Positions 1 to 49,149 of a DNA stretch of 64,000 bases are shown piece after piece. The notes below the pieces were generated by a model, which saw only the letters and a program-made list of their open reading frames with translations, had not been told where the DNA came from and searched no databases. This DNA comes from Macrostomum hystrix (lineage: Eukaryota; Animalia; Platyhelminthes), in NCBI GenBank assembly GCA_950097015.1, contig CATNEN010000005.1:5642001-5706000 (forward strand). Reading direction: 5' to 3'. The position numbers and the translations under genes are program-made. Positions within the stretch are counted from its first letter, which is position 1, and each line of letters begins with the position of its first letter.

Positions 1-1
1 A

Positions 2-8329: not shown

Positions 8330-10408
8330 GCAATCCAAAAGTTTGATGAAAATATGTGTTGTCACAAATTCTAGTAGCAGTGAAGATGACACAATTGATC
8401 AGCAAGACATCATCATGGCTGAATACCACAATCAAGAAGTTGAATGATGATCAAGAATCAAATTTACAACCTAGAGAGCAAGATCAGAGTGACAATGGGC
8501 CTATAAACTGGGAGCAAACAGTTAGAAATCTTGAAGAGAGTGACAATGATTCAGTAGGCCTAGCATCTAATATTGATTGTGAAGATGATTCAGATTCAGA
8601 AAGACTCAAGTGCTGATGATGACAGTTTTGAATAAGACCTTGATTTAGCTAATAGACTTCGAAGCGTTTTTATTGACCACAATGTTACTCATGCTGCAAT
8701 CAAAGATATGCTGAAAGTTTTAAAACCATATCACCCTATGCTGCCAACAGATCCTCGAACTTTGCTTCAGTGTAAAGGCAAATCAAATCTAGTTGATGTC
8801 CAACCAGGAAAATATCAACATTTTGGTGTTGAAAATGGTATTAGTGAAGTTTTTAAGTTAAAAGAACAAGATAATACTATTTTTAATTTGGATGAAATAC
8901 ACATAATACTTTGTGTCGATGGATTGCCAATTTTTAATAGTTCTGTCAGTGGTTTTTGGCCTATTGTTGCTGCATTATCTAATATTCCTTCATCTACATT
9001 TCTTGTTGGTCTATATTATGGAGAGAAAAAGCCCCAGAGTGCTGAAGAATTTCTTCGACCACTTATTGCTGAGTTGCAAGTCCTTGCTTCTGGCAAATGT
9101 TTTCTTGGGAAAAAACGCAAGGTTATTCTAGACTATGTCATATGTGACACTCCAGCTCGTAGATTTGTTAAATGTGTAAAGGCACATAGTGCATTCTTTG
9201 GCTGTGACCATTGTGAACAAAAAGGTACCACTGAATATGTTCAGACCCTGAACAAGGGAAGGGCAGTAGTTTTTCTTGAACTTGATGCTGCTATTCGAAC
9301 TGATAGTTCATTTCGTTTGAAGTTGCAACCAGAGCACCACGATGCAGCCTCACCTTTTGAGGATCTAGCTATAGATATGGTCAATGGCTTTCCTTGTGAT
9401 CCTATGCATTTACTTTATCGTGGCATTGGCCCTATGCTTTTAAAGCTTCTGAAATAAGGACCCAAGCCATTTAAAGTATCCCAAGGAATTATTAGTCAGA
9501 TAGACAGGTTGTTATTACACATTCGGCTTTATATCCCTAGTGACTTTTCTCGTAAGCCATCTCTTCTACAGCACTTAGGAATGTGGAAAGCTACTGTTGT
9601 CCGCCAGTTTTTTTGTACTTGGCCCCTTTCATTTTTAGCTCAACAGTAGAAAATCTAGAATTTCAAAGCCTATTGTTGTCATTTCATGTAATTGTAACTT
9701 TGCTTAACATTAAGGATCTTAGTGGTGAATATATTGCGTCAGCTTTGTCGCAGCTTCATAACAGGAGGCATCCAATTGTTTGGTTGTCAATTTGCTGTGT
9801 ACAATGTTCATTCATTGTTACACTTGGTTGAGGATGTTCTTGCCCACAATAATATAGATGAAGTCAGCTGCTTCCAGTTTGAAAATTTCATGCGCTTTGT
9901 GAAGCGGCTAGTGCGAACGCCAAATTTGCCACTTCAGCAAGCAGTTGCCAGAGTATTTGAACAAGGTCAATGTTTAGGTCAGTGCAAGCCAACCTCTTCA
10001 AAACTTGAACTCTCTAAGGAGCATAGCAGCAATGTGCTTCCTATAGATACAAATGTCAGTGATGTGTGCCAATTTAAGTGTTAGAACTTTGGCTTCACTT
10101 GCATCAGACTAGGGCGCCGTGATAGCAATATTAGCACTCAAAATGAAAATGTTCTCAAAGTATGCAACATTATAAAAGATGCTCATGGTATCTGGTTGGT
10201 TGCTCAACGGTTTACAGAAAAGCGCTCTTTTTACAACTGTGTGCTTAGCTCCTCTGACTTAGGAATACTTGGAGTGCGAAATCTGTCAAAAAAACTAACT
10301 AAGGTTAACTTGTCTAATGTATATGCCAAAGTAATGGCCATTCCACTGCATGAAACATTCAATGAATGGATGACCTGCCCACTAAGGCATACTGAAGGTC
10401 TATTTTAG
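8330..10408 (+). pseudogene. CMC/EnSpm-type transposase, disrupted
   Basis: LPTDPRTLL, LCVDGLP...FWPI, VICDTPAR..VK..H..FFGCDHC, DPMHLLY, YNVHSLLHL and FENF motifs. Split by stops and frameshifts at about 8616, 9457, 9600 and 10084. Confidence 0.85.
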
Positions 10409-10491
10409 GTGCAAGCATTCCTTGATGTACAAGTTAGATCTTTAAATTATTATCTTGCTTGCCCAGGCCCTTAGTATTTTATTTCAGTACA

Positions 10492-12568
10492 ATGAAGCGA
10501 TTTGCTCTTGCTGAGTTTGATGATGGCTCAGTTGTGTTGCCACTCACCTGGTTAGCTAATGATAAGCAAACTGCTTTTCTACCTAACAATTTTCATGATG
10601 CTCTAAATGCATCTTTCTTACGTCTTGTGAAAAAAAGTGCCGAAGTAGGCAAGGACTAGCCCTCATTTAATGTCTTAAAAATCCACTTGGAAAACGGTAT
10701 GTTAATGTTTAAAATATTGTATTTTTGTTACATTTTATGTTTTTTAAACTATCTAATGTGTCCAATACTTAATTTAGACGACTTAGAGTACCTGCTTTAC
10801 CGTCTGCGACGCTCCAAAGACTCTGGGACGTTTTCGGACACAGACACAAGTTCTAAGCGAAAGCGACGATCTGTTGAATATTTTATTGACTCCAACACTA
10901 CTAGCACTACACCTAAGCAAGCAAAAAAGTGTCCAACCTTTGTTTGTCCGTCTCCACCTACTGGTTGCTCACTTAAATCAGCTGCTGCATCGTCCTCACA
11001 TAAGGAGCAGACTGTTGGTGCTTCTGACCTCCCGCAAGCCTGTGCTACTAATTCTGCCTTTCAACAAGCTGGTGCTGCTTCTCCTGCTCGTCCGCAAGCT
11101 AGCTCTGCTTTTGCTCGTCCGCAAGCTGGTGCTGCTTCTCCTGCTCGTCCGCAAGCTGGTGCTGCTTCTCCTGCTCGTCCGCAAGCTGGTGCTGCTTCTC
11201 CTGCTCGTCCGCAAGCGAGCTCTGCTTCAGCTCGTCCGCAAGCTAGCTCTGCTTCAGCTCGTCCGCAAGCTAGCTCTGCTTCTGCTCGTCCGCAAGCTAG
11301 CTCTGCTTCAGCTCGTCCGCAAGCTAGCTCTGCTTCTGCTCGTCCGCAAGCTAGCTCTGCTTCAGCTCGTCCGCAAGCTAGCTCTGCTTCAGCTCGTCCG
11401 CAAGCTAGCTCTGCTTCAGCTCGTCCACTGGCTGGTGCTGCTTCTACTGCTCATTCACTAGCTGCCCTATCTGCTCGTCTGGAGCCAGCGGCATCTACTT
11501 CAACAGCTCCGTGTCATTGCAAGCATCTTGAAAGTAAGTCGTTCAGCATTTGTGTCACCACTGACCTTGTATTGCATTTTGATTATTTACAATTTCACTG
11601 ACTATTATATTACAGAATGGATAGGCCTCCTACTTGAGCATATACTCGAGCTCAAGACTCTAGTTGCAAGTGGAAGACAGCAAATCGACATCCCAGATTC
11701 TCTAACCATGTTGCCCGTCCGAACGCGCAGAGCTTTCGAGGCTTTCTCACAGTTGCTAGATGAAAAAGAAGACGTCCGTGCCGAATACGTAAGTTGATTG
11801 TAAGCAGCTAATTACGCTGCCGCCGATTTCTTTATGTACTTAATTAGGCCATTTATATTACCAGATCAAGATCGGAAAAATGTAATAAATATATAATTAT
11901 ACTATTTTTTTGTTTTAGATTCAATACTGCATTGCTAAGTCTGATATACCGAAGCTGACTGACGCAGTAGTTTCAATGCTGGAGTTCACAGCAAGGCCAG
12001 GCGTTCTAAAACATTTCAACATTCAGGGCCGTCGAGGCAAGGCTAGATTGCCCCAACCAACTGTGGAGTGCCTATCAAGTGAGTTTCTGTAGTGTTGAGG
12101 CAACTTTGAAGATATTATGCACTAAAAATATTGATACAATTATAACATTAATTTGCAGAGATTATCACTGAGAGAAAGCATTTTAAGCGTCAATTAGGAA
12201 CTACTACTCTGTCTGCATTTATCGGAGGAATATTGAAGCGGATGACAAAGAGGGCGGAGCGTCTAGGAGAGACAATAGATGACGATCGTGACAACGAGAC
12301 GAGAGAAGATGATGAGCGGGGCGACGATACCAACGATGAAGAGAAGATGGATGAGGAAGACGGCGGGAGCATGGAGCCGGGCGATGATCGCGACGAGGAA
12401 AAAGACCGCGGCAGCGTGGAGTCGGACTATGATGGCGACGAGGAAGAAGACCGCGGCAGCATGGAGCCGGACGATGATGGCGACGAGGAAGAAGACCGCG
12501 GCAGCGTGGAGCCGGACGATGATGGCGACGAGGGTAATGACGACGGCAGTAAGGAGGCCGGACAATAA
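10492..12568 (+). pseudogene. Second, intron-containing gene of the EnSpm element (TnpA/DUF4806-like accessory gene)
   Basis: ATG at 10492 (MKRFALAEFDDGSVVLPLTW...), in-frame TAG at 10657, several GT-AG introns, low-complexity middle and acidic tail. Family assignment is inferred from position and layout. Confidence 0.5.
11068..11445 (+). repeat. 30-bp and 27-bp coding tandem repeats (AGAASPARPQ / ASSASARPQ)
   Basis: Direct reading of the repeat units. Confidence 0.9.
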
Positions 12569-14322
12569 GTAACAGTGAATGACTGATTAGATGAGATATG
12601 TACACTCGGGATCAGTCGCTTGTGAGACTTTTGTACCAAAGAAGTATTTATATCTACCACCGTACAGGGTGTCCGCAACCTGGAAAATCTGGAAAAACCT
12701 GGAAACCCCCAAAACAGTAGAAAAAACTGGAAAAAGACCAATGTGGGAGTGGAAACCTGGAATTATCATTCGTCCTGGTAGCGGGTAGCTGGTGGCCGCA
12801 AGAACATATGCTCTCCAAGAATATTCTATCTTTTCCGATCATGTCCCCTTTTAGTTTTCGTCAATTGCTCATTGCTCATTGAAATCGTTTAATCTGAATT
12901 TTACCCAATTTCGCTATGGAAAAATATAAAGCTCGTAGTGTTGTAGCATGTGTGAATGAATGAATGAATTAATTAATTGCTTCTGATCTGAATTTGGGAG
13001 CTGCGTAGCTCCCGAGCGAGCTGGAAACACTAAATCAATAAACATTGTTGCGTACATTCAATTTATAAAGCTCCTTTAATTTTATAACACTTCTTCGCTG
13101 AAATGGAATTTTTACTTTAGATTCATATTTATTGGTATTGGCGGAAGCGGTAGCAAATAGGCATGGCTATTCGTATAAATAAAAGTAGCGTGCCTTTTTG
13201 GGATGGGGTTGATGATCAGATATTTTGCCTTATTTTAATTTGTTCTTTAAGTGCATTTAAAGGCGTACGTGTATTTGTATTGAATTGGTACGGGATTTAG
13301 TTGTGCGACACCTTAAAATTAGGCTGTTCGTGGAATTAGGATGGCGCGCTGCACTGCACGCATGGATTCCTGCATGTCGTGCAAAGACATTCACAATACG
13401 TAACAAAATTTCGTCATGGGAACGTTGGGGAGACGAACAGGAAAACGGACGTGAAACCAAATGAATTTCCTCCTGGATATGTATCATGGACGTAACCATA
13501 CGTAAAAATGTTGTTCGGGTGGATGTGGGAAAAGTGCCTTAGGTCCGGTGGGAGTCCGGTAAGGCAAGGTAAGGCTCCCGGAAAGGTTCCGGTAGGGAAA
13601 AAGGGTAGGTAAAAAGGTAGGAAGAAGGTTGTCCTAGGGGCAGCGCAGCGCGCTTTCTTAAATAGTCCTGCAGCACGCCAACCCCGACATCCATCAAAAT
13701 AACCCACATTCGCGCCAGCCTGTCATCAAGGAATCAAAGCGGCGAAGGCCACCCCGATTACCCAATGAACCAGCGGCGAGAAACGACAGATGCTCCCTCG
13801 CGAGCAGCCGCCGACAGTCGGCCAATAATTGTTACTCCGCCAGGACAATGGGAAGTGCAGGCGCCGACCTGCCTACAGTGACATTTACATGTATCTAAAG
13901 GAGGGAGGTCATAAAGTCGAGCTGGGCTCGAATACTGTAAAGAAGTGGGGACGTGAAGAATTTATGATCACTCATAATGCCCAAGTGATTCCCAATATCT
14001 GATCGCGGTTTGGAGGGGAATTATGACCTAAACTACTCATACAATAAAAGCTATGGCCGAGATCAGTCATTCCTACAGGGGTCTAGACAGATCCAGGGAA
14101 AAGGGATTCGACGGCTACTTAATTCACCGCCGCCCAAAACCCGGCCCTAAGATTTATGATCTTGTTTGTGGCCAGCTGCTAGGTGGGTCGCGATTATTGA
14201 TTGCTTAAAAATTTGAAAAATTATGCTGGCTCACATTCCCACTCGATTCCCGCAGCACACTCCACATCAGCTTCTAAATTCGTATTGAATTCTGAAGCAA
14301 CCAAGTCACTCTCGTACTGAGA

Positions 14323-15390
14323 ATGATTAGGACAGCATCGCAGGAGGACCTCGCTAAGCAGTTATTCTTAAGCAATAGCGAGAGTGAAGAAATGAACATC
14401 GAGGATCAGCTATTATTAAGCGATAGTGATCATGTCGCTAAAGATTGGGAGAAAGAAGCTGAAAATGAGGCACCCGAGAAGCAGCCAACTTGGCCTAAGT
14501 CTGTAGGTACGACGAGAAAACCAGCCAAGAAGGATGGGCCGGAGGTGCGTACTGCGCCTGCTGTGCCAACCGCCTTACAGAAGCCACAAATACTGCCCAC
14601 GGTCCTTCAAGTGGTAAAGGCGAACAACAACCTACCCACACAGAAGCCGGCAGTGATGCCACAGCAAGGAAGAAAAAGACTGGCATCCGTGGTGACGAAA
14701 CCAACGAAACCAACAGCTGACAAGCATAAATTACTACGCTTACAAGCGAACACCCCCGTAGTAATATCTGAAGAAGTGATAAAACGTCACCCTGAAGGCG
14801 CCAAGCCTAGCACGTTGTTAAGCCAGTCAATCTGGCGGGCACCACCAAAGGCAACTCGAAAATGGCAGAGACTGCAGCCATTAGAGTTACCACCACCAAC
14901 AAGAAAACCAGCACAGCCGGTGCCAACAGGCAAATCTGTTTCACCGCCTCGTGACCCGAGGAAGCCACCACAACAGGTTTGAAGACAAGAGATCAAGGCA
15001 AAATCATCACAAATACTGTCTAATAATATGGGTGAAGAGTATGGTGTGCTACTGCATACCTTAGAAGGCAACCAACAACAACAGTTAAAATGCCAGGTCG
15101 CACTACTAAAACAACATTATCTAAAGACTGGGCGGTACGAAGATAAACGGCCACCACCAAGACGAGAAGAAATTATGCCGGTTATCCATAAGTTAAAGCG
15201 CAACTTCTCACCAGAGCATGCTGTGGCCGCATGGCAGCGAGCCACCCAGTATGCGCTTCACTCGCTGGATTTGATCGCCAACGGCTACAACGTCACGAAA
15301 ATGCGTATTGAAGTCGCCTGGATCGGCCAGGAAGTCGGCTGGCCCTTTAAGGACCAGCTACCCAAGGAGTTCGCCTTGGACAAAGATTAA
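14323..15390 (+). CDS. E1 accessory ORF (~355 codons, one in-frame TGA at 14980-14982)
   Basis: The 14323 and 15028 ORFs are in the same frame and the gap between them is open after the single TGA. Pro/Lys-rich N-part, then a helical C-domain resembling the E2 and E3 accessory ORFs. Confidence 0.6.
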
Positions 15391-17941
15391 TATACTACAT
15401 ATCTTGGACTTTTGATAATTTCCATACTATATCTCTTATATACTTGCATACTTCCTTTTTTTCTTTGTGCCTATCCCTTGTGTATATAATATGCTCTTAT
15501 GCTTTTATGTTTCTTTTTATAATTTTTTCACTTCTTTTTAAAAATTATTGTAAAGGGAAGCCAGTTGAGGTAGTTAGAAGTTTATCGTTTTAGAATTCTA
15601 TTATTATTTTAAATTTTTTTGTGTAAACAAATATTGTCAATAAATTGTATTATGAAATGTATTTTATTAGTATAGTAAATGATTTTATTCTTTTGTAATA
15701 ATTAGTCTTCTTGTTTAAAAAGGAATTTAGTTGCGATATTTGTTTTAATTTTCTCCGCCACCCCAACCTTTTGGTATATATAGCAGCAGTTTTACGTCCT
15801 CGAAATATAACTTCCTTCACCGTTGGCTATAAAATTTATTCAAAAAAGTAAAAGAAGCCATTATAACTTAGTGTTATTTATTTAAAGGTTCTAGAACTGT
15901 ATTAGTTCTGGTAACGAGAAAGTATACGGTGATCATAGTGTTGAACTGTACTAGTTCTATACTATTATCTAGGGTATATCAACGTATTGTTGATCTAAAT
16001 AAAGACGTATTGTCTTTATTACTTAGGTTAAATCAACGTATTGTTGATCTAAATAAGACATATTGTCTTATTAGTTACAGGGTATATCAACGTATTGTTG
16101 TTATTGTTATTAAGAAAGAATTCTCACTCCTGATCGTGACTGCCGGGCAATTTCAATCCACAGCGTAAAGCCCCGGAAGACTGGAAATAGAATTTTAGGA
16201 AGTGCCTTACCGCTCGGGCACATTCAGCTACCATAGTAACACGTCATTCACGTGATACTAATAGACAAATATTAGAAACTAGGATAAATAAAACCGCACA
16301 GAGAACGGCTGCTACATGATAGTGTATTTAAACAAACAGACTTTCGAGTTGGAATAACTGTCGGAATATTCCAACAGGTAATGTAACACATTAACTGTCG
16401 GAATAAGTGTCGGAATATTCCGAGTTGGACTAAGTTTCTAAGCTCTAGGACAGATTAGTTAGGTACCCGGTAAAATGCGGAATCCGCAACGGAATCGGAA
16501 TGGAATAGTACGGTAAAACGCGGAATCCGCAGCGGAATGGTAAACTGCGGAACGAAGTGCGGATTCCGCACATTAAAGTAAAACGCGGAATGCGAAAATA
16601 AAAAAAGTAAAATGCGGAATGAAAACTAACTGAATTATACTTTTATTCATCACCTTATATTTAAAAAATCATCTGAAATTTATGTACATTTTTGCTGAAC
16701 AAATTGTTTTTCATTGTCACTATGACACTCAAATCAAATCTGTTGATCTTCCCTTAGCATGAAGATAGAGCTTTGGCAACTTATTTAAGGTAAATTCATA
16801 CTCTGGAAGCGAAAGTGCATACTACGTACAATTTTTATATTTAATGTATTTCAAAAGTGCCCGCTGACATGTGGCGAGAAGTCATCCTACATCCTATTGC
16901 TGTCAAAAAAAATCGTAGCATTAAATGTGCATTTCTTAAAAAAAATTCTATCCGAAACTTTAGGACAAGATAGATTTTAGCGAAGCTAAAATTACGATTT
17001 GCAAGACGCCTTTACGTTTTTAGTGTCAAGAAAGGCAATAAATAGTACAAGGAGCATGGAAAGTCAGATCAGTCAGATCAGTATGGAAGGTCAGTACCCT
17101 CTGGGAAAATCGCCGGCGAATCGCAAGCGAATCGTCAGCGAGACAGCGAAGTAGTGGCGACAATATTTTTTCTTCATTTCCCATATAGAACGTTTCAAAA
17201 AGCTGTGTTTGTCTGGAACTTTTCTTCCTGCAGCATAAAACATAGTTTTTCCACCTCGGTCGCATTGGCGAATCGTCAGCGGAACATTAGCGAAGTTTCG
17301 CCAGCGACTTTTCGCCAGCGACGGGACAGCGAATCACTGGCGAATAAGCGCTTGATTATTTATTATTGGGGCTCTATTTTGCTAGTAAATATAAGAAAAT
17401 GTATAAAATTATTTGATTTCTCACTTGCATAACAATCCCTTCATTCTATTCTATCGAATTTACCACTGCTTGGGGGTATGAATCAGATAAATAATATATA
17501 GTGACTTCTCTAGGCAATAGAAAGTTAGGTATAACGAGTGGAACTCCTCCACTGGAGGACAAACCCAAGAAATTCGACTCCCCGAATTGTAATGTTGATG
17601 CAGTGTTTGAATCGCGAAGTCAAGGCATAGTATGGAAATTATCAATCTGGGCATACGTTTATATTTATAGTTGCACATCGGGTTCCGGAGTAACTATTAC
17701 AAAAAAGGGCATTGTTTTTATCGCAACCTTTTTGTTAACTTTATTAATCTATGCCTGCAAATAGTGCTTACTTCTAAGGACACAAATCAATTGGCCGATC
17801 TTTTTGCTTGTTTAAATACTTATTTTTCAACATTGCCGACAGGAGCAATTCAAATGTGTTTGCGCTCGTTCCGTCGTAACTAGTAGAGTCTAGACAAAAT
17901 TTATATAATGAGACGCTTAAAATGTTTTCTCTATTTCTCTA

Positions 17942-19075
17942 GAGTTTGAGGACTTTTGTAAGCTGTATGGCATCCGTCATACGCACACGTGTCCCTATAA
18001 CCCGGCCAGTAATGGCCAGGTCGAAAACCTGAATCGCCAAATCAAGTCAGTGCTCACGTGCTTGTTGGAAAAGGATCACAAGGATTGGGACCTGATGCTG
18101 CCCGCGTGCTTAATCGCGTTGCGCACCAGTGTCCACCCTGTGACCGGGTACACGCCGTACTTCCTGGTCTTCGGACGGGAGTACCGGCTGCCCGTAGACA
18201 ACACGTTGACTGCGCTGGCTGAGTACGCAGACTTGCCAGATTATCTCCGACATTTCCAGGAGCGCATAGACCAGGCGGTCAATTGTGCCCGGGACAAGCT
18301 CGAGAGGTACCAGGTGCTGCGAGAAGAACACTACCAAGAAAGACCGCAGGCGAGACCACTCCGCCCAGGCCAGCTGGTCCTGCTTAACAACCCGGTGATC
18401 GAATCCGGCGAGATCAGCAAATTCCATCGGCCTAGACAATCGGTCTACGTAGTGCTCGAGTGTAAGGGCGAAACGGTGTACAAGATCAGGCGACACGGCA
18501 ACACCAGGAAGGCCAGGAAGCAGGTGCTGGTAGTCCACCGGCGCAACCTGCTCCCGGTACCGGCCTCAATATGCGACAGGACGGAAGAGGCGAGCCCGGC
18601 ACGGCGGAAGCTCGGAAGGCCACCCAAGGGCAGCCCTCCAGTAGCCGACGCGGCCGGTGAGCCTGCCGACAGCGACGACGACGACGACGACGAGATCGGC
18701 CTGTGGAGCGCTCGAAGGTGGCACCTGCGACCACGAGTTGTTTCCAGGTCGAATCCCCACGAACCGGCCGGTCCAGAGAGCTGCAACGGAGAAGAGGCGG
18801 GGGAGGCGTATGGTGATGTGGTTGTCCTGCCGTCGGACAGTCCGTTGCCCTCTCCAACCCCGTCCCCTATCCCATCCTCTGTGCACGGGGAAGTTGCAGA
18901 AAGTGTTAGGACCGAAGGTGTAGGTGAGGCTGCTCAGATAGGTGAAGCTAGGGATCAGGAGACGCAGCAGAGGCCGCAAAGAGTTAGGCGAGAGCCGGAA
19001 AGGCTGCAGGTCGATCCCAGGAGAAAATCCTACTTCATCAGAATGATGCGCCGCCTACCTAAAATGTTTCAGTGA
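17942..19075 (+). pseudogene. pol: 5'-truncated Ty3/Gypsy integrase (element E2)
   Basis: EFEDFCKLYGIRHTHTCPYNPASNGQVENLNRQIK...TGYTPYFLVFGRE...VHRRNLLP; colinear with the E1 integrase. Nothing upstream of about 17930. Confidence 0.88.
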
Positions 19076-19126
19076 TCTCCTGTCCGAATCCATCCGGAGA
19101 AGATTTCCTGAAAGAAATAATAAGAA

Positions 19127-19918
19127 ATGGAAAACAAAGAGAATCTAGGTCCGGAAGAGAGGATGCCGACACGCCCACGTCTAATGGGGCTAGTGAGGAA
19201 GATCGGTGATTCAACGGAGCAGGCAGTCAAGCGCCCTGCTGCAGCACCGCTTGGGCCAGCTGGCAAGAGGCGGCAGATAGCCGTGCAGGCGGTGCCGGAA
19301 ACCGCAGAAGCCGGTGTACAGGTTCGCCGACCTATTGTGAGCAGCAGCAGCAGTGGGTCCGACGAGGCCCAAGCAGACCCTGTGGAAAACGTGTGGGCTG
19401 CCTTGCAGGAGGGCATGCCCTCGGAGGACGAAGGCCTTTCGGATCCAGACTCCTCTGAGGAGCTGCCAGTCGTCGAGGGGCCGGCAGCACCACCGCCACT
19501 GCCATGGCAACCGCCCCAGACCTCTTCCTCCAGCGACAGCTTGGAAGAAGCGGGCGCGGGGGCCAGGCCGAGAAGACGGCGAGGCGGCGCCCAGCGACGC
19601 AGGCAGCGTCGGGCACAGTGGGGTCATCGGGCGCCGGACAGAGAGCGTGCCGTTGGCGAGTTGGCCCAGGCTTTGGCGAGAGCAGCCCAAGGAGCACGTG
19701 AAGATGGGTGGCCGGCCAACATCCAACAGGGTTTCATCAGCGAAGAAAGGGCCACCAGGAGGGAAATGGCCCACGAGGCAGCAACGCTGGCGGAGCGAAT
19801 CGTCGGCGGTCCAGCTGCGGCCCCACTGCTACTGGTGGCACGGTATGGACAGGCGGCGATCGAGCTCGTCGAAGCCGCGTGGTACCCTGAGGCCCTCATT
19901 AGGATGGCCAGGTTTTGA
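19127..19918 (+). CDS. E2 accessory ORF, 263 aa, unknown function
   Basis: Intact ORF 52 nt after the integrase stop, strong Kozak context (gaaATGG). Disordered N-part and helical C-domain with the shared motif. Confidence 0.7.
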   Translation: MENKENLGPEERMPTRPRLMGLVRKIGDSTEQAVKRPAAAPLGPAGKRRQIAVQAVPETAEAGVQVRRPIVSSSSSGSDEAQADPVENVWAALQEGMPSEDEGLSDPDSSEELPVVEGPAAPPPLPWQPPQTSSSSDSLEEAGAGARPRRRRGGAQRRRQRRAQWGHRAPDRERAVGELAQALARAAQGAREDGWPANIQQGFISEERATRREMAHEAATLAERIVGGPAAAPLLLVARYGQAAIELVEAAWYPEALIRMARF

Positions 19919-20274
19919 CAGGGCCGTTTAGGGCGATTAAGGGTGCTGTCCTCTTTTAATGTTGTTGAGTGATTGTTTTTCCTTTTTATCCAGTTTTCAT
20001 GTGCCATGCCCATTTATTTGCTAGTTCATAGCGTGGTGTGTTCCTTTTTGTTTGTTTTAGTGCGGATTGTGCATGTTTGTTCTGTTGGTGTTAGTTCCAT
20101 TTTTTCGGTGTGAATTTTGGTGCGCCACTAAAGATGGTCATTGTTTCATGTAGCTTCATCTTTATGCGCCATTACAGAAGAAAGAAATAAAAAGGAAGCG
20201 TTGCTTACCTGTTTTGGTTTAAGTGCGGCTGACGGCCAGCCGGTGTTGACCGTCATCCTTTAGCTGGAGGAGAA

Positions 20275-21627
20275 TGATGTGCTGTAGACTGCTGAGCAGC
20301 CTCCAGGCAATCTGTGAGTCAGGCTGTTCTAGGTCTGTGGGAGGGCTAGGGGTTGGTAGTTAGTGTTTCCCGTGCACTGTCACCTCCGCTCGCCACCCCC
20401 TCCGCTCTCTCTCTCTCTTTCCAGCTCTGTCTGCGCACTGAGTCACATTGCACACCATGGTGCAATCGCTTAAGTTCGGAAGAAGACTGGCAGAACAACG
20501 CTCAAATGCTCCTACTATAAGTAGAGCACAGTCCGACGAATCCTTGAGATGGTGTTGTTATCATGGTAGCACGATTTCTGTATGAATATGGCACTTTCTT
20601 GTCTCCAGTCTTCATGCGTTTTGCAACGTTTGCGTTTCACATCGATTGTGTTCTTTTGCAATCTTTGTATCTTGTCTGCTAACATTATTGTGAAGCAAGG
20701 CCGTGTGTTGCATTTAGAAGCATAGCACATCGCCAGGCTTCAGAAGCAGGGAATCTAAGTAGTAGAACATACTGCTAGAGCCTAAATAAAGACCGAGGAA
20801 ACTAGGTAATCTAGCCTGACTACCGGGTTGCTCCACTGCTACGAAGCATTCAGTGTTGAGGCCGGTAAACTCTCTCTCTCGGAATCTGGTTCCTGTCTTG
20901 GTTATTTGCCAATTGTGTGTGCCACGCTACCACAGGTACAACAAAATAAATTGGCTTAAGTCTTAATTGTGTGTTTGGCACAGAGATTACGTGAATTTGC
21001 TGCCGTCGTGATTGATTGCCGCCATTCCTGCCCTCAATATTTCAGAGTTCCCGTGCCGCCGCCGCCAGTGCGAGTGGAATTTGCTATTAGTAAGTTGCCG
21101 TAATCCAACTTTGCCTCTCATCCTGACTTAGCCACCAGTGAAATATTATTCGAACGAAATCACTGAATCCCTGCATTCACCCCCAGCCGCAGCTGCTTAA
21201 CTACCCACTTCTTCATAAAACAACCCATTCCATCTTCCACAGATATTGACGTGGCGCCCGGCCACCTTGTGCAGGCCGCGCGCGACATTGGAGAAAGCAT
21301 ACTATCGGGACCGATCGGCCCAATCGCTGCGGCCGGCCTCTTGGCCGTCGCAGGGACCCTGATGGCCGCCTGCCTCCGCCAGCGCCGTTGAAGGAAAAGA
21401 GAGGCCGAAAAGGACGGGCTCTGGGATTTTTTTTACAAAGACATTGACCCCAGAGCCACTGTATATAATCCCAATTTTTATTTCCCCTACCCTTCCTTTG
21501 CTTATTTTTTTTTTGATGCATGTTTTGCTTGCTTGTATATAAATTGTAAATAGACCACTAATTACTTACTAATTACCTTTACTATTAATAAATTACTCTT
21601 ATTCCGAACATGCTATGTGCCGTTACA
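20275..21627 (+). mobile_element. Putative 3' LTR of E2
   Basis: Purine run ggaggagaa (20266-20274) directly before TGATGTG, the same start as the E3 LTR. AATAAA at 21587; tentative end ...GTTACA at 21627. Confidence 0.5.
20984..21391 (+). CDS. Putative small spliced gene ending in a hydrophobic segment (exons 20984-21089, 21243-21391)
   Basis: gtaagt donor at 21090, ttccacag acceptor at 21242, frame preserved across the junction. Ends IAAAGLLAVAGTLMAACLRQRR*; AATAAA downstream. No start codon located. Confidence 0.35.
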
Positions 21628-22464
21628 TGATTTCTCTCGCTAGGCCTTCTTCCTTTAAAAGAACGATGCTAGAAAATTCTAAAGGACAACGCGTCATTCC
21701 AAATCTACCACTAAAATGTGCTTCCTCAATAATAGTAAGGTGAACATGGAACTAAATTGAAAAATCACAACAGAAAGGCTTGTTTAGGCGCCCGCAATCC
21801 AGTTGATCCATCTACGTAAACAACCCTGTCCTTTTCGCGGTGCCTCACAGTCACTTCTCACCTCCCTTAGAAAAAGGAGCCACCATTGAAATGCCCACTG
21901 CCTTCTAAACCAATAAGAAAACTCCTCTCAACCTGAGCTAAAAGCCTGCCAGTCCTTGTTCAATCACCCACCCCACTCCAAACTTAGAGTGCCCATCATA
22001 CCACCCCGCTCACTTTGGCGGGTTGGTATCCCTCCTAATATAGAAATCTGTCCCCAGATGAACCAACTCCCGGGCCTACCCGAAACAAAGCGATATAGAG
22101 GGTGCTGTTTAAAATGTGGTGCGGGTAATATTAAATGTTTGAGAAAAGAGGGGTGCACGCCCTAGACTGCTGCAGTTAGAAATTATCTCAAGCGAAAAGT
22201 TTACTAGGGGAATTTCACCCCACTATGTATGTTTTTGGGTTTTTGACTAAAATTGTAAGAGTTTTTAGAATAAGATTTTTGTGCCAAGACGGCTTTAAAT
22301 GAAAGAAAGGAAGGTATGCACAATAGGAAGAGAGCAAAAGGTGCATAGTGCGAATGATTAATAGAGGGAAAAAGGACGAGGGGAACGAAGGAACAATTCA
22401 GTGGGTAGGGCTTACCATGGATGCTTTTCGCGCATTATCGTGCCCTTACTCGGATCCTGGGCCC

Positions 22465-23049
22465 CTATTCCTCGCCTCCATTCTTGATGGGAGTACTCCC
22501 TACCAGGCTCTCACCATCATCTTCCCCTTCCATCTGCCTTACCATTTGGCCGAGCGTGCTGTCGCCTGGTGGCGTCTCCTCGATGGTTGATGCCTCTACC
22601 GCCCAGCTTCTCCATGGCGTGGAGGCTAGCCCGGAAGATTGCCTCCAGACGGCTTCGCCAACTAGCTCTCCCACCAGCTGGTGCTCGAGATCCCACCTGC
22701 CAGGTATCCGGGTAGCCTGTAGCCAGGACATGAGGGCTTCGGGCACTGCCATGCCCCAGTCTTCTGGCGGACAGTAATGCGGCCACCGGAGATTCCAAGG
22801 CAGGATCTCCTCGTCCTCACCTCTTGGCGGGCTCGGGTCCCGTTCCTCGACCCATGCCTGCGCCAACCACCGGGCTTCGGCTAGCCTGCATGCCAGGGCG
22901 AGATCGATTCCGGCCTGTGCCGCACGGCCCAACGCAGGGAGTAGCCACAGGCGGACCATAATCCAGGTACTCCTGCCGGCCAACTCTCGCCGATAGTCGG
23001 TGGCGACCGTCTCCAGCCACCAGGCCACAGTGATGCTCAGGCCAGCCAT
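22465..23049 (-). CDS. E3 accessory ORF3, 194 aa, Trp-rich, unknown function
   Basis: Intact, gacATGG context, first ATG after a strong splice acceptor; N-half carries the shared motif. Confidence 0.65.
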   Translation of the reverse strand: MAGLSITVAWWLETVATDYRRELAGRSTWIMVRLWLLPALGRAAQAGIDLALACRLAEARWLAQAWVEERDPSPPRGEDEEILPWNLRWPHYCPPEDWGMAVPEALMSWLQATRIPGRWDLEHQLVGELVGEAVWRQSSGLASTPWRSWAVEASTIEETPPGDSTLGQMVRQMEGEDDGESLVGSTPIKNGGEE

Positions 23050-23180
23050 GTCGACAATCCTTGTTAAAATGAACTGACTGCGTCCCTTCTAAACTTCCCG
23101 GCTCCTCCACTAACCTCCAGTCTAAATATCCCCAAGGGGGGGAGAGGGGGGGAAGGAAAGGGGAGGGGAGTTCCTCAGCC

Positions 23181-23726
23181 CTAAAAGGCAGGCTTCCGCC
23201 TGAGCGAGAAAGGGATGGATTGGCTGTAGATTATTAGATTTCGCGAGTCAAAATCGAGAATGGCGTGATGGTGAACCAACCAGGAGGCGCCTAGCAGGGG
23301 GGAGCAGTCGCCCTCGACCACAAGGAATAGAGTATCCAGTGCTTCGGCGCCAACCTGTAATTTGATCCTGACCTGCGCGAGTGCAACAATTGGTGTGCCA
23401 TTGTACGTAATTAGTGAAAATTGAGGGGGTTCGAATGGGAACTGTCGGATGATGGATGACATCGAGCCCGGAAGCACATTCACCATTGACCCAGTGTCGA
23501 TCAGGAGGTCAAGGGGTGCTCCGTCCAACTCCAAGGCGACCCACACCTCACTGAGCTTCTCAGAGCGGTTGGGGCGGGTGCGCACTCGGGTGGGGACTCG
23601 GCCGAGTGAATTCACTCGGGCTTTGATGGGGGAGGCATCAACGGGGGGGCCTCGATCGCCCGAGCTGCCTGAGGCGCCTCCGGATAATCGGGCTGCCTCC
23701 AGTCGGCGGCCCCACTCCCGTTTCCC
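23181..23726 (-). CDS. pro: E3 aspartic protease, reached by -1 frameshift
   Basis: LDLLIDTGSMVNV...PLLGASWL motifs; frame is -1 to gag and open through the heptamer at 23720-23726. Confidence 0.88.
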   Translation of the reverse strand, partial: GKREWGRRLEAARLSGGASGSSGDRGPPVDASPIKARVNSLGRVPTRVRTRPNRSEKLSEVWVALELDGAPLDLLIDTGSMVNVLPGSMSSIIRQFPFEPPQFSLITYNGTPIVALAQVRIKLQVGAEALDTLFLVVEGDCSPLLGASWLVHHHAILDFDSRNLIIYSQSIPFSLRRKPAF

Positions 23727-24685
23727 GCGGCATAGTTCCCACGGTACTTCTTCCGCGGCCCCATTGCTACCCTGGGGTACCACTGGTGCCCGGACAGGTG
23801 CGGATGAGGTGGGCGGGCCGGGGTTGGTTGTGATTCGCGCAGCTGCCGCGTGACTTCCGCGAGCTGCTGGGAAACTTTGGCCAGTTCCTGGGCCAAGTGC
23901 TGCTGCTCACGGCGGACGGCTTGAATCTCGCCGGGGGGTTCTTGCTCCTCGGCTAGCCCGGCCCTGACCTGGCGCACTCGGCGACGGGGGTCGCGCTCAG
24001 CGGCCATCTCGAATGCCTGGGTGGCGGCGCGCAGCTCAGCGGCAGCCGCCTCTACCGTGGCGAATTCTATCCGCATCATGGGCGCCAACACCTCCGGGGG
24101 GGCCGTGATACCTTCTAGGAAGGAGGCCAGGAGGGCTTGTTCAAAGGGTGGGCCGCGGCCATTGGGGTTGACCTGGGTGGCCACAGATCGCAGGCGGTCA
24201 GCGAACGAGGCGTATGACTCGCCTCTGTCCTGCTTAAGGTTGCGCCCGCTAAGGAGCCGGGCATAGGGTGTGCAGGCGCCGCTGAGGGCCTCGGTCAGGT
24301 CTTGCACAAACCGCGGGTAGGTCACTCGGCGCGGTAGGCTCATGGCCTGGGTCAAGGGTTCGCCCCCTAAGTGAGCCAGGAGGGTGAGGATTTTCTCCTC
24401 CTCCGTCTCAAGACCCTCGGCCTCGACCTTCAAATTAAACCTGCGCAGCCAGCGGGGAAAAGAGTCCTTCGCCGACTCGAACGGTTCTAAAGCAATTTTT
24501 ACTCGGTGGGTCCTAGCCCGTCGCGGCTCTAAACGCTCCATCAGGGAGGCTAAGCGCTCCACTGGGTCTGCCGGCTGGGCTGCCGCAGTTGCTGGGGGTT
24601 CGGCTCGCGCTGCCGCTGCAGCGCGGCCTCTCGGTGGGCGGGCACTGCCAACAACCTCCACCACCTCATCCTCCTGGTCAGACAT
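23612..24685 (-). CDS. gag: E3 Gag, 357 aa
   Basis: ATG at 24685 (MSDQEDEV...); FPRWLRRFNLKVEAEG...LKQDRGESYASFADRLR. Architecture parallels the E1 Gag. Confidence 0.85.
   Translation of the reverse strand: MSDQEDEVVEVVGSARPPRGRAAAAARAEPPATAAAQPADPVERLASLMERLEPRRARTHRVKIALEPFESAKDSFPRWLRRFNLKVEAEGLETEEEKILTLLAHLGGEPLTQAMSLPRRVTYPRFVQDLTEALSGACTPYARLLSGRNLKQDRGESYASFADRLRSVATQVNPNGRGPPFEQALLASFLEGITAPPEVLAPMMRIEFATVEAAAAELRAATQAFEMAAERDPRRRVRQVRAGLAEEQEPPGEIQAVRREQQHLAQELAKVSQQLAEVTRQLRESQPTPARPPHPHLSGHQWYPRVAMGPRKKYRGNYAAGNGSGAADWRQPDYPEAPQAARAIEAPPLMPPPSKPE
23680..23726 (-). other. -1 frameshift cassette: G_GGA_AAC, 7-nt spacer, H-type pseudoknot
   Basis: Stem 1 gggccgcc/ggcagccc (one mismatch); stem 2 ctgga/tccgg; short loops. 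Confidence 0.75.
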
Positions 24686-26017
24686 GTTGGCCACAGAGGG
24701 AATGAGGATTTTGCGAGTTAAGAGGGGGTTTGTCGCTAAAGCAACACTGGGGATGAGAAAAAGTGGGCTAAGCGGGGTGCTGCACACGGCAGTGGCCGCG
24801 GAGAATAAGCAATTGAAAAACCCGGCCCTAGCGAACAAAGACTGCGATGCAGCGGCCGACAAAGCGATAAATGAAAAACTGATAGGAGAGAGAAAGGGCC
24901 CGGGGCCCTGGCTAGCTCTACTTCCAGCCTTGGCTTCCGACAACTGCTTGCGCGCACTCGAACTTGGGACATAGGAATCTAGGTTTTAACTTAGCACTCA
25001 TTCAGCAACCCTATAGCGGACTGTTACACTACAGGTACGGCGGGGCCAGTACTACTGCAAGCTTGCGCCTGCAGCAGCCTATCGCCCTACCTTGGAAAGT
25101 ACACGACTTCAATAAGTTACTCAAGAAGGCTAATCCCCGATTCGCTCAGAGGGCCCTTCCCGGGGGGGTGGCCGGGGGCTTCGCCTCTGCGATTTACAAG
25201 GCTGGGAAGTCCAGGTATTTTACATCTGGAGCCTCGCTTCGGCTTAGGAGTCCGTAGGGCAAAAACCCGGTAACTGCGTTTAGACTACCCTTCAGAGAGC
25301 TTCTTAGAAAAGGTCGTGCCGACCGATTTCTAGCCCATCCCCAAGGTCGGCAGTTTCAGGGCGCCGGCACGGGCGTCCTTAGACTCCCTCAGGGTCCCGA
25401 CCCTTAACTATTCCGCCCCTAAGTTAGGCTTAGTCAAAGTTACGTGGCACCTTCAGAATCAGGAACATGAAAAACGGGCCTTGCGTGATGCCCAAGGAAA
25501 GGCTAACCCCCGATTCGCTCAGAGGGCCCTTCCTGGGGGGTGGCCAGGGGCTTCGCCTCTGCGATTTACAAGGCTGGGAAGTCCAGGTATTTCTCCTCTG
25601 GAGCCTCGCTTCGGCTTAGGGGTCCGTGGCTTAGAGCCCGGTTACTCCGTTTAGATTACCCTCGCCTAGAACAATCACGCAGGAAAACCCCGCAGACAGT
25701 CCCCGACTCCTGCAGTAGCCACATAACCCGAAGACACTCTAGCATGAAGTCCACTCACACAGCCTACTCATAGTAGAAAGTCACTAATCAGAATTTTTAG
25801 AAACTCTAACAAAGCCTTACATTAAAGTCCGAATCAAATTGAAACTGTTCAAAGAAAATTAATTGACAGTTACTCGGAACTGAAGTCCAGTCTCCAGAGA
25901 TAAGATTCCGGCATACGGATAATGAAATCTAGAAGGAGCCCTTACGGCTAGCTACTACAGAAATCTGCAGCGCTAAACTAACAATTGAAATTCAAGTTCG
26001 TTTCGCACCCTTTCTAG

Positions 26018-26037
26018 ATCCCACCTCGATGCCACCA
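26018..26037 (-). other. Primer-binding site resembling tRNA-Leu
   Basis: TGGTGGCATCGAGGTGGGAT, one nt after the LTR-terminal CA. It resembles the complement of the tRNA-Leu 3' end (TGGTGGCAGCGGTGGGATT) with about 2 extra nt. Confidence 0.6.
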
Positions 26038-26038
26038 T

Positions 26039-29000
26039 TGAAATAGCTGCGGGTTTGCAATCCGATGATCTGTCCTCGTGAAGGAAAGGAGTGTGGGAAT
26101 GGCGATAGAGTCGGAAGTCATACCGCAAAGGTTCGCGAGTTGCCGCGGAAAGAGGGATGAAGGGAGAGATGAAGGGAGAGACAGTGGATGCAAGGAGTGG
26201 TCCTCTCGGCCTCAGGCTGGCCAGTCCCACTCAACCCATAGGCCACAGACATGACTGCCGTGCCTACCCCAAGCAGTGCTCGAAACCGGCTAAAAGTCTA
26301 AATAGATGTCGGACTACCCGCAAGCGGATAGGACAGGGCTAGGTAGCCTACTGTCATCAGTAGCATGTTCGTAACTGACTCCTAAACTTGGTAGCAGTGG
26401 TCGACTCGGCCTAGGCTCTTGTCTTAGAAATGCGGAAAGGCTATCGGCAAAGCGGAAAATGATCTAGGGTAGCGCCACCACCCAATGCGCCTACGTTGCC
26501 ACCGCAGACATTTGGGAACTTGGGTCCCCGGAGCTCGCGGCTCCTAGTTTGTCACACAGATCTTAGACAAGCCGAAAAAAATAGAGCCTTCTGTAACTTC
26601 CGTTTTAGACTAGGGTGAAGACCCCAGAATGGATCGAGACACGCCTCACCAGGGGATTCCTGAATTTGCGCTACAGTGGTCTAGAAAGGTGGTACTCCGA
26701 ACCCGAAAGAGAAATCCATAGCCAGAATCCTACTCATGAAACATCAGACACATTCGGTACATTAGACTGCAGCCTACACATTAGATAACTAGCAATCCGG
26801 TCTGTGTGAGTTGAGGAAAACAGAGGCAGGAGAGGTTAAGCTGAACACTGGCTGAGTGATTATGCGAGCGTAAGATTAAAAGATCATCACCCCCCACTTC
26901 CCTGGCGGTGGAAGCGAGAGGGGGAACGGAAGGGAAACTCAATTGGCAGGGGAGCTTGACACGCATTCCCAGTTCCGCCAGGAAACGAGGAAAACCCGCC
27001 AGGGAATTCCCCACCCCTGGGCAGAAAGACAACACGTGCTACACTCCGCATTTTACTTGCAAATCCCTAGCTCCTTATTACTTTCATGCGCGCTCACAGT
27101 TATCCTCCTGCCGCAGCTTTCAGCTAGGCATCACCAGAGCCCATCCCCCTAATAAGTTAGCCACTCATGATCGAGGGCTGCCTAACGATAAAATAAAGAG
27201 AAAAGAATAGCATGATAAAAGGAATTAAGTTGTTATTAAATTGGCCTAATTATTAAAGATGGCAGTCGATTAATGAATGGTTTATTAGGCTACGACAATC
27301 CCGGCCCTTGCCCTTATTTCCCACTAGCTAAATAATAAATCCCTTAGGGATAGCAATAAAAGTCCGCTGCGCGGGTTACTTATCTGAATGCGCTGGTTGA
27401 CAGGCTGCAGGCCGTCGATCTCGCGGGGGAATGCAAATGAACGGGAGAAAAGGTGAGGAATTGCTGAGTACAGTTGGCAAGGGGCCAGACTGCAGGGAGC
27501 TCAAGGCTCAATTTGGAGCGCACCTAAAGAGGTGGCTTGCGCTTAAGGGCACTAGCAGGTAGTTGCCTGCTGCTATGATCTGGAGCCTTAGGCTCAGGGA
27601 CTAGGTGCTAGCCTAGAAGGGGGAGAGTCCACGGACCGAGTTCCGGGACCGGACAAGGGAAAAGGGTTGTAGGGGCGGGAGGAAGGTGCAAGGTTCGGGA
27701 AGCTTTTTTTCCTAGGGGCAGCGCAGCGCGCTTCCTTAAATAGTCCTGCAGCTCCGCCAACCTCGCATTCATCAAAATAACCCACATGCTCGCCAGCCTG
27801 TCAGCGAGGAATCGGGTCGGCATTATGCCACCCCAATTGCCCACTGAAGCGGCGGCGAGAATCGCCAGATGCCCCACTAGGAGCGTCTGCCGGCAGTCGG
27901 CCAATGATTGTGATCCCGCCGGGATATGGGAAGCGCAGGCGCCGACCTGCCTATAGTGTCGTTACATGTATCTAAAGGGGGAAAGGTCATAATCGAGCTT
28001 CGGCTCGGGTTACAGTAAAGAAGAGGGACATGAAGAATTAAAGCTCACTCTAAACGCATGAGTGATCCCGACAATCTGATTGCGGTTTGGAGGGGAATTA
28101 TAACCTAAACTAGTCCATACAGTATTTCTATGGCCGCGATCAGTCACTCCTACAGGGGACTAGACAGATCCGAGACAAAGGGAATCGGCGGCTACTTAAT
28201 TCACCTCCGCCCAGTGTCTGGCCCTAAGATTAATGATGGTGTTCTGCGGCCAGCTGCTATGTGGGTCGCGATTATTGACTTGCTAAAAATTGGAAAAATT
28301 AGGCTGGCTCACAACCCCACTCGATTCCGAAGTACACTCCACATCATACGCGCTATTGCTCTCATACGCGCTTACAATTGCCTTCCCGCCGCAGCTTTCA
28401 GCTCGGCTGTGCCAGAGCCCATTCCCCTAATAGATTAGCCGCTCATGGTAGAGGGCTGTCTAAGGTTAAAATAAAGGTGAAAAGGAGACATAATGAAAGA
28501 AATTAAATCGTTATAAAGTTAAGCCCGATAAGTTAAAAGTGCTTAGATTGGATAGTTTATTAGGCGAAACAATCTCTAGCTTCCCTCCCACTAAAATGCC
28601 GCCTAACTAATAGAAAGCCCCTTAGGAGCAATAATTGCAAACCGCTGCGCGGATTACTTATCTGGAGTCGCTTCGGCCGCGTGCTGCAATCCCGTTGTTC
28701 TCGGGGAAGAGGATGGGGTAAGATAGCAAAAGCCGGGAAGGGAAAGATGCTGCGAGTCGGCAAGGGGGCCAACACGCTTGGAGCTCAAGGCTCAATTTAG
28801 CAGCTCACCTAAAGAGGTGGCTCGCGCTCAGGGGGAATGGGGACAGGCAATGGGCCTGCGCTAGCTGTGGAGCTATGAGCTCTAGGGTCTATGCCCTAAA
28901 TGGGTCTGGGGGATAAGTCCTGGGTCCGGTGGGAGTCCGGCCCGGCAAAAGTAAATCCGGCAGGGGAGAAGGGGAAGAGCCGGTGGGAGAAAAGAGGTCC

Positions 29001-29636
29001 GGGTCCAAGAGGGAGCAGCGCCGCGCGCTTGCTTAAATAGGCTTTGCAGCACGCCAACCCCGACATCCATCAAAGCAACCCACATTCGCGCCAGCCTGTC
29101 ATCGAGGAATTGAAGCGGCGATTGCCGCCCCAATTGCCCAATGAACCGGCGGCGGGAAACGACAGATGTTCTGCGCGAACAGCCGTCGGCAGTCAGCCAG
29201 CGATTGTTACTCCGCCGGGACAATGGAAGCGCAGGCGCCAACCTGCCTACAGTGGTATTTGCATGTATCTAAAGGAAGGAGGTCATAAAGTGGAGCTGGG
29301 CTCGAATACTGTAAAGAAGCGGGGACATGAAGAATTTTACGATCACTCATAACGCGTGAGTGAGCCCCTATATCTGATCGCGGTTTGGAGGGGAAATATG
29401 ACCTAACTAGTTCATACAGTAACATTATGGCCGCGATCAGTCATTCCTACGGGGAGTCTAGACAACTCCGGAGAGAGAGGATTCGACAGCTACTTGCCGC
29501 CTCAAACCCGGCCCTAAGATTAATGATCTTGTTTTGTGGCCAGCTGCTATGTGGGTCGCAATTATTAGTTACTTAAAAATTCGAAAAATTATGCTGGCTC
29601 ACATTCCCACTCGATTCCCGCAGCACACTCCACATC
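26039..29636 (-). mobile_element. E3 5' LTR, 3.6 kb, with an internal ~1.29-kb duplication
   Basis: TGATGTGG...TTTCA on the minus strand. 28347-29636 repeats the adjacent ~27070-28346; homologous to the solo LTR. Confidence 0.75.
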
Positions 29637-39447: not shown

Positions 39448-39491
<44 letters not shown>

Positions 39492-48330: not shown

Positions 48331-49149
48331 GTTAACAAAGATTGCACAGAGATTCAAAGCAATTTAGACGACTCCGCATTTGGATTCCGTTGTAAATGTC
48401 GCGCATTTAACATCAGATGAACAAAGGTTTAGGACAGTTTGCTGACAAACGCGCCACCGTTTTTATATTATTAAAGACTATTTTTCAACAGACCAAAGAA
48501 GCTTACAAGAAGTTTGCCTACCCAACGCAATTTCGAATTTGGAAATGCCAGGCTAAAAAACACAAGCGGCGTGTGCAGACGGAGAGAATATTATTAACTG
48601 GCGCAATTTCGAAACAGGGCCCACACACAAGCAGGCAGTCTGCAGGATTGGCTTCACAAGCTGCGTGTGCAAGCCTGGTTTGAAACGCAGGTCGAATCGC
48701 GGTGGTGGGGAAGGGGGAGCTGCGCAGTGGAAAAAATTTTTATGGCTGGAGGTGGCCACGGTATTAAACTCCTCAGCTCCAACGCTAAACTGCTTCTCTA
48801 TCCATGCTTGAAGCCGCAGCAGCGACGCCATTGGCTGCAATCAAGGAAAGTAAAAATAGGCAGAGGGAGAGGGTAGGGGATAGGGGGGCAGAGCAGTAGA
48901 TTGTAAGTAAAAAATTGGGCCAACCATTCCACCAGTTTGACGATGCGGAGTAGCACGATTTCTGTTTTACTAGAAATTCAATGCCGATTTTTTAAAGCCA
49001 TATCTCACAGCTGATCAAATGGCGTTACCACAGTACCAGTACTGTGGTACGAGTACGACAACTGCTTCTGTCATTGAGAGCTTTTACTGTGAGCTAGATG
49101 CCAATCCATTTCGGCTTTGAGTGGGCGGACAGAGAGATGGGTAGATAGA

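Follow-up and report, generated by a model that had tools for sequence, protein, structure and literature searches.

The 64,000-nucleotide (nt) stretch of the Macrostomum hystrix genome analyzed here (contig CATNEN010000005.1, positions 5,642,001 to 5,706,000; hereafter the window) contains parts of three Ty3/Gypsy retrotransposons, namely element A and two further pieces, E2 and E3, each followed by an additional open reading frame (ORF). An earlier note on this DNA had proposed that the three additional ORFs (E1 in element A, the E2 ORF, and the E3 ORF) carry one common motif of about 50 residues and thus constitute an accessory protein family. We compared them with each other, with the other open frames of the window, and with related elements of Macrostomum lignano, in which the ORF of element A has a counterpart, termed ORF3. 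Element A and its surroundings are composed as follows:

1–5635, plus strand: element A, Ty3/Gypsy gag (cut by the window edge)–protease–reverse transcriptase (RT)–RNase H–integrase (Pfam, tblastn)
5835–14269, unstranded: nested insertion between element A pol and ORF3, a copy of a 2.3-kb repeat that is itself interrupted by ~6.2 kb of further inserted sequence (window self-comparison)
14323–15390, plus strand: element A ORF3, ~355 codons in a single frame with one in-frame stop (M. lignano homology, codon usage)
15391–16461, plus strand: AT-rich stretch after ORF3, presumed 3' untranslated region and start of the 3' long terminal repeat (LTR) (composition, analogy with the M. lignano element L005)

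The Ty3/Gypsy domain set is complete and in order in element A (Pfam matches to Retrotrans_gag, gag-asp_proteas, RVT_1, RT_RNaseH, Integrase_H2C2, and rve), and partial in E2 and E3. Compared with the single pol ORF of M. lignano relatives, the pol of element A is broken twice, by one in-frame stop and one frameshift. Its close M. lignano relative is P0001/L001, with tblastn identities of 59% for protease–RT, 63% for RNase H–integrase, 67% for the C-terminal region of integrase, and 70% for gag.

ORF3 of element A consists of an N-terminal motif, a low-complexity stretch rich in Pro, Lys, and Gln, and a helical C-terminal domain of ~110 amino acids (aa) that ends in VGWP..LP. The open frame E1 spans positions 15028–15390 (plus strand), and the segment highlighted in the earlier note (15160–15324) lies within the C-terminal domain. 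The two pieces of the gene were searched separately. The C-terminal piece matched M. lignano ORF3 with a BLASTP E-value of 8e-5 (27% identity over 89 aa, colinear), and both proteins end just past the common VGWP..LP. When the 1141 window open frames with a length of 30 aa or more were searched with M. lignano ORF3 as an independent query, E1 was the sole match (E = 5e-5), and none of 5000 shuffled sequences reached the score of the E1 comparison (z = 9.2). Furthermore, the frame upstream of E1, which lies in the same frame and is separated from it by one in-frame stop, contains a 20-residue motif that matches the N-terminus of M. lignano ORF3 (E = 0.003), again in colinear arrangement. As both the C-terminal and the N-terminal piece match M. 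lignano ORF3, E1 is shown, at the level of homology, to be the C-terminal piece of element A ORF3, a genuine ORF3 of a Ty3/Gypsy family common to M. lignano. Another window stretch (56185–56310) matched the first 75 aa of M. lignano ORF3 with an E-value of 0.016; this match was judged spurious, and an RNase H-like stretch suspected nearby found no support in Pfam.

In M. lignano, ORF3 encodes 291 aa and is located ~400 nt past the pol stop and ~290 nt before the polypurine tract and the 3' LTR. Its position between integrase and the 3' LTR is thereby shown for M. lignano; in the window, E1 and the E2 ORF follow integrase, and the E3 ORF follows protease. The M. lignano copies include a 256-aa variant and an interrupted one. 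Among the loci, L005 represents a full element bounded by a pair of LTRs, and L001 is a tandem LTR–internal–LTR–internal array with units of 99.8% identity and a period of 7898 nt. At none of the loci L001, L004, and L005 does the M. lignano assembly (GCA_002269645.1) annotate ORF3 as a gene. This gap hides ORF3 from protein databases, and blank protein searches are not to be taken as absence. A check for selection, as the earlier note had suggested, gave a positive result: the M. lignano copies showed an excess of synonymous changes, with six synonymous and three non-synonymous variable codons in the ORF3 frame (neutral expectation 24% synonymous, p = 0.009), compared to ratios of 1:9 and 0:10 in the other frames. 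The summed pairwise ratio of non-synonymous to synonymous substitution rates was about 0.22.

In the window, ORF3 is separated from pol by 8.7 kb, owing to the nested insertion of ~8.4 kb. A near-identical direct repeat of 10–13 nt stands on both sides of the insertion (5835–14269), and the split copy of the 2.3-kb repeat occupies 5845–7440 and 13629–14269. This distance, and the start of the ORF only 54 nt past the common end of the 2.3-kb repeat, would fit an ORF outside element A, i.e., a host exon or part of another repeat beyond the LTR. We consider such an origin highly improbable. The 2.3-kb repeat is found elsewhere without pol or ORF3, and the near-identical direct repeat beside it has the appearance of an insertion; by sequence comparison, it inserted later between element A pol and ORF3. 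The possibility that it represents the 3' LTR of element A, which would place E1 outside, was rejected, as the M. lignano loci hold the same ORF inside the element. E1 was also tried as the gag N-terminus of a second tandem copy, and this was dismissed, with neither a TGG resembling a primer-binding site past the repeat end nor similarity to gag. By analogy, positions 15391–16461 presumably hold the 3' untranslated region of element A and the beginning of its 3' LTR, cut by an element with terminal inverted repeats that is described below. The 5' LTR lies outside the window. Because no 3' LTR is definable within the window, it is the M. lignano relatives only that show ORF3 to lie inside its element.

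The features of E2 and E3 are as follows:

17921–19075, plus strand: E2, a 5'-truncated Ty3/Gypsy fragment rich in guanine and cytosine (GC), comprising the C-terminal region of integrase and an acidic/Pro-rich tail (tblastn, HMMER)
19127–19918, plus strand: E2 ORF, 263 aa, intact (codon model, profile of the N-terminal motif)
22465–23049, minus strand: E3 ORF, 194 aa from ATG, 7% Trp (codon model)
23181–23906, minus strand: E3 protease open frame, -1 frame relative to gag (Pfam gag-asp_proteas, E = 1.2e-4; profile of relatives, E = 1.7e-17)
23612–24685, minus strand: E3 gag, 357 aa from ATG (tblastn, 26–27% identity to the gag of element A and M. lignano)

Both are regarded as fragments because E2 retains only the C-terminal region of integrase, and E3 only gag and protease. 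The beginning of E2 coincides with a sharp jump in GC content at ~17.9–18.0 kb. Its integrase is 42% identical to that of element A (tblastn), and a whole-library HMMER search (1.84 billion representatives) yielded 27383 matches, the best of which was M. lignano P0001 (44%); most of the named top matches were from M. lignano as well. Judged by these identities, the E2 integrase is closest to the element A family. The E2 ORF shares the frame of integrase and starts 51 nt past its stop, the interval containing two in-frame stops. It comprises an N-terminal EN..P...PTRP.. motif, a disordered middle part rich in Ala, Pro, Ser, and Glu, an Arg-rich tract, and a helical C-terminus, within which the segment quoted in the earlier note (19757–19918) is found. 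A longer form of the N-terminal motif, EN..P...PT.P[KR]..G...K, may be common to the E2 ORF, the N-terminal piece of E1, and M. lignano ORF3, and a profile built from the other two sequences ranked E2 as the best non-self match among the 1141 frames, with borderline E-values of 0.012–0.05. This motif differs from the one described in the earlier note and is the sole hint of a link between E1 and E2. The overall layout is also shared with ORF3, i.e., the motif, a disordered basic or Pro-rich region, and ~110 helical residues. Because of this borderline match of the 20-residue N-terminal motif between E2 and M. lignano ORF3, the E2 ORF is a candidate for a divergent ORF3, and we rate its being a fast-diverged positional homologue at just short of even likelihood.

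The E3 ORF is located in the -1 frame relative to protease, starts 132 nt past the protease stop, contains the segment at 22849–22992, and ends ~65 nt short of the end of the GC-rich block. Beyond the E3 protease, nothing resembling RT or integrase was detected, in agreement with the earlier note. Its suggestion that the deleted element had kept the same extra gene did not hold: no relation of the E3 ORF to E1, the E2 ORF, M. lignano ORF3, integrase, or the linker between protease and RT was detected. The profile of the E1-type C-terminal domain assigned it an hhalign probability of 0.4%, the N-terminal motif is absent, and a profile of the protease–RT linker of pol gave no match. By all these comparisons, the E3 ORF is an orphan, coding-like ORF in a truncated gag–protease fragment, without detectable relatives.

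Regarding the relation between the two fragments, no DNA or LTR similarity that would make E2 and E3 halves of one element was found in the window. Downstream of both the E2 stop (19919–19945) and the E3 stop (22405–22465, minus strand), a short GA.TAAGGG..C tract is followed by pyrimidine-rich sequence. These tracts might represent the polypurine tract and LTR start of related families, although the similarity is very short. The same unusual arrangement is present in M. lignano at locus L002 (NIVC01000504.1, 10052–15201): a plus-strand piece of integrase directly adjoins a minus-strand gag–protease–RT–RNase H element, the two converging just as E2 (integrase, plus strand) and E3 (gag–protease, minus strand) do in the window.

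The matches underlying the proposed common motif are genuinely present. The quoted E1, E2, and E3 peptides are exact translations at their coordinates, the patterns RRE[LM]A-x8-R[IL]-x3-PA and R-x2-QA-x-I[DE]L are both found in E2 and E3, and the spacing from [LI]DL to AW[IV] is equal in E1 and E3. It was likewise borne out that the DNA of the three regions is dissimilar, as DNA comparison revealed no similarity. The alignments themselves, however, lie at chance level. BLASTP yielded E-values of 0.13 for E2/E3, 1.8 for E1/E2, and 0.002 for E1/E3, the last in a register other than that of the earlier note. Shuffle tests of the hand-picked motif segments gave p-values of 0.21, 0.89, and 0.016 (the latter for E2/E3), and E2 versus E3 as whole ORFs gave p = 0.40. 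As an empirical null, we used 1975 non-overlapping pairs of window open frames of at least 120 aa; the score of E2/E3 was reached by 12%, that of E1/E2 by 36%, and that of E1/E3 by 6% of these pairs. An antisense frame of E2 turned out to be a better alignment partner for E3 than the E2 ORF. Furthermore, the anchors RRE and LDL of E1 are not conserved in M. lignano ORF3, and only the W of AWI is kept. The earlier note had itself named scores no better than shuffled sequences as evidence against a homologous ~50-aa domain common to E1, E2, and E3, and the scores are at shuffle level. By these statistics, the 50-residue motif is a chance pattern of helix-prone, Ala/Arg/Leu-rich sequence, and a single family comprising all three ORFs is not demonstrated. 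More generally, the chance rate of such short helix-prone motifs between GC-rich open frames of a repeat-dense window amounts to 10–30%.

Independent of the motif, the three ORFs were analyzed for their coding character. Two codon models were used: one, derived from E2 integrase, E3 gag, and E3 protease, for the E2 and E3 ORFs, and another, derived from element A pol, for the E1 gene. Read in their own frame, and in no other, the E2 and E3 ORFs resembled these known genes of the GC-rich fragments, and the two pieces of the E1 gene resembled element A genes; further long open frames that overlap the E2 and E3 ORFs scored as non-coding. E1, E2, and E3 are therefore probably real coding sequence. 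Of the claim that each element has an extra ORF 3' of pol or protease, the part concerning E1 stands with a conserved gene, and that concerning E2 with an equivalent position and coding-like codons; in E3, the ORF is an orphan after protease. The ORFs had also been described as not Env-like, which is supported by a maximum 19-residue Kyte–Doolittle hydropathy of 0.45–1.28 across all of them, never reaching membrane level; no Env family was found in Pfam at E ≤ 1. Sequence searches of the three ORFs in Pfam and the PDB returned no significant match. No relatives were found in length-limited word searches with all three ORFs (the whole-library HMMER search used the E2 integrase only), nor in exact look-ups of the window ORFs or in metagenome and viral scans, and exact look-ups of P0005 and P0081 gave no match.

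Taken together, we consider it fairly likely that the common motif arose by chance, that E1 belongs to a genuine ORF3, that the E2 ORF is possibly a diverged ORF3, and that the E3 ORF is an orphan; a role of ORF3 in RNA handling is a low-confidence proposal. Several observations weigh against parts of this interpretation. The selection test covers nine variable codons in four M. lignano copies, two of which are tandem neighbours. Self-comparison of the window revealed no LTR pair for element A, E2, or E3. As to E2, the N-terminal motif has pairwise E-values of 0.081 and 0.24, its profile score was reached by shuffled databases in 1–4 of 40 trials, and the full-length comparison of the E2 ORF with M. 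lignano ORF3 (p = 0.016–0.045 with local-window shuffles) is largely compositional. In addition, the profile of the E1-type C-terminal domain indicated no relation to E2 (hhalign probability 0.2%). The RNA-handling role is drawn purely by analogy, and no confident fold was obtained, with single-sequence structure models reaching a mean pLDDT (predicted local distance difference test) of 46 for E1 and 54 for E2.

The idea that all three ORFs share one homologous C-terminal domain of ~50 aa, as an accessory family that E3 kept after the loss of RT and integrase, can draw on the real string matches and on the coding-like character of all three frames. Moreover, an ungapped 42-aa alignment of E1 and E2 stops at the same E.AW spot, with the same spacing in M. 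lignano. ORF3 also evolves very fast, with 25–27% identity between copies whose pol is 59–70% identical, and for this reason homology among the three ORFs could escape detection. Nonetheless, no test rose above chance, the E1-type domain profile disfavours both E2 and E3 as given above, the anchors of E1 are not conserved in its true homologue, and the motif is C-terminal in E2 yet N-terminal in E3; we therefore regard a single family of all three as very unlikely. Still less credible is an origin of the E2/E3 motif from the integrase catalytic core, of which it would be a faint trace, with the ORFs being decayed pieces of pol rather than accessory genes. A pol profile did choose integrase segments in both ORFs, within or beside the motif, but these hhalign matches reached P = 0.18–0.26 only and were judged to be noise. 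Pfam rve matched neither the E2 nor the E3 ORF, a profile of the integrase core ranked them 88th and 107th among the window open frames (E > 60), and the protease–RT linker profile likewise misses E3. On these grounds, a trace of the rve core was rejected at the sensitivity of these searches.

A weightier objection denies that the E2 and E3 ORFs are genes and regards them as open frames of GC-rich, stop-poor untranslated or LTR sequence in dead fragments. Several overlapping frames are open in both regions, relatives were found nowhere searched, E3 contains 7% Trp, and both fragments are truncated passengers within the element with terminal inverted repeats. Against this, element-like codon usage and position-specific composition are seen in the named frames only and not in the overlapping ones, and the ATG of the E2 ORF stands in good context 51 nt past the pol stop. 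The blank protein searches carry little weight, given that annotation misses even the proven ORF3 of M. lignano. A non-coding origin of both ORFs thus appears unlikely, though not negligible. A bolder version of the ORF3 interpretation would unite E1-type ORF3 and the E2 ORF as deeply diverged members of one unannotated accessory family without known domain across the Macrostomum Ty3/Gypsy clade, in which the PT.P motif docks a host factor and the basic region and helical domain handle the RNA of the element, i.e., an independent flatworm counterpart of CERV (see below) and Rev. We think this version rather unlikely.

The remaining features of the window concern the insertions around these ORFs and the neighbouring genes:

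16462–30589, unstranded: 14.1-kb element with perfect 191-nt terminal inverted repeats (16462–16652 and 30399–30589)
26054–29637, plus strand: 2.3-kb repeat copies B (26054–28346) and C (28354–29637, partial) (window self-comparison)

The 14.1-kb element is flanked by a perfect 9-bp target-site duplication (GATTAGTTA at 16453–16461 and 30590–30598) and carries E2, E3, and two copies of the 2.3-kb repeat as cargo. Its terminal inverted repeats are rich in GCGGAAT sub-repeats. It looks like a recent insertion of the DNA-transposon type, with a repeat length and duplication size resembling Mutator; no transposase was found in it. The copies of the 2.3-kb repeat are 72–87% identical and all finish at the same ...CCACATCA terminus, with B and C in partial tandem; they may represent solo LTRs or repeats of another kind. 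Within the split copy beside ORF3, the ~6.2-kb insert (about 7441–13628) contains ORFs at 8636–9454 and 9722–10084, which belong to no Pfam family, a 27-nt tandem array at 11084–11426, and a 45-nt tandem array encoding acidic repeats at 12356–12563. Host-gene exons are present at 37202–48363 (minus strand; SH2 and tyrosine-kinase domains), at 50130–52258 (minus strand; DHH/DHHA2 domains), and at 61181–64000 (plus strand), the last being an open frame of 940 codons that has a teneurin-like EGF match and continues past the window end.

Extra genes past pol are a route by which retrotransposons gain new abilities, including envelope proteins, RNA export factors, and enzymes, and few of them have been characterised in animals beyond flies, nematodes, and rotifers. 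ORF3 is such a gene, conserved between the element in the window and M. lignano elements (pol 59–70% identical) and lacking a recognisable domain. Based on its position, composition, and precedent, we propose with low confidence that ORF3 may be an RNA-handling or adaptor protein. Such an accessory protein, soluble and not Env-like, would be made from a subgenomic message and might serve the element's own RNA as a nuclear or RNA-handling adaptor, comparable to CERV of Cer1 or retroviral Rev. The basic disordered region could contact RNA, and the helical domain and the short N-terminal motif could contact partners. The roles suggested in the earlier note, host-defence suppression or the handling of particles or RNA, are likewise conjectural. 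In M. lignano, a transgenic-ready model, LTR elements are transcriptionally active (PMC12801592), and expression and localisation of ORF3 are for this reason directly describable there.

Several known systems resemble ORF3 to different degrees. In plant lineages, long intervals between pol and the LTR carry lineage-specific ORFs of unknown function, a likeness by layout only. Retroviral regulators of the Rev/Rex type, which are encoded 3' of pol, are accessory proteins of small size, soluble and rich in Arg; here, the likeness is by description only and applies to the Arg-rich tract of E2 and the basic clusters of ORF3. CERV, a protein of the Caenorhabditis elegans Ty3/Gypsy element Cer1, has a role in the export of genomic RNA (PMC10309623). 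Like ORF3, it is non-Env, has no homologues outside a narrow host group, diverges fast, and has predicted helical and disordered parts (PMC10309623). However, CERV comprises 517 aa, is spliced from five exons sharing gag sequence, and has a Cys-rich region (PMC10309623), whereas ORF3 comprises 290–355 aa with at most few Cys, and our searches returned no sequence or structural relation between the two. Bdelloid rotifer LTR elements harbour diverse non-Env ORF3s (PMC5408684). Most of these contain recognisable domains (GDSL esterase, DEDDy exonuclease, or membrane/coiled-coil), in contrast to the ORF3 described here, which has none. Like it, they are family-specific third ORFs past pol in metazoan Ty3/Gypsy-like elements, and some are common to different element lineages (PMC5408684). 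One non-autonomous rotifer derivative has kept ORF3 while losing most of pol (PMC5408684), which is the very scenario that the earlier note had proposed for E3.

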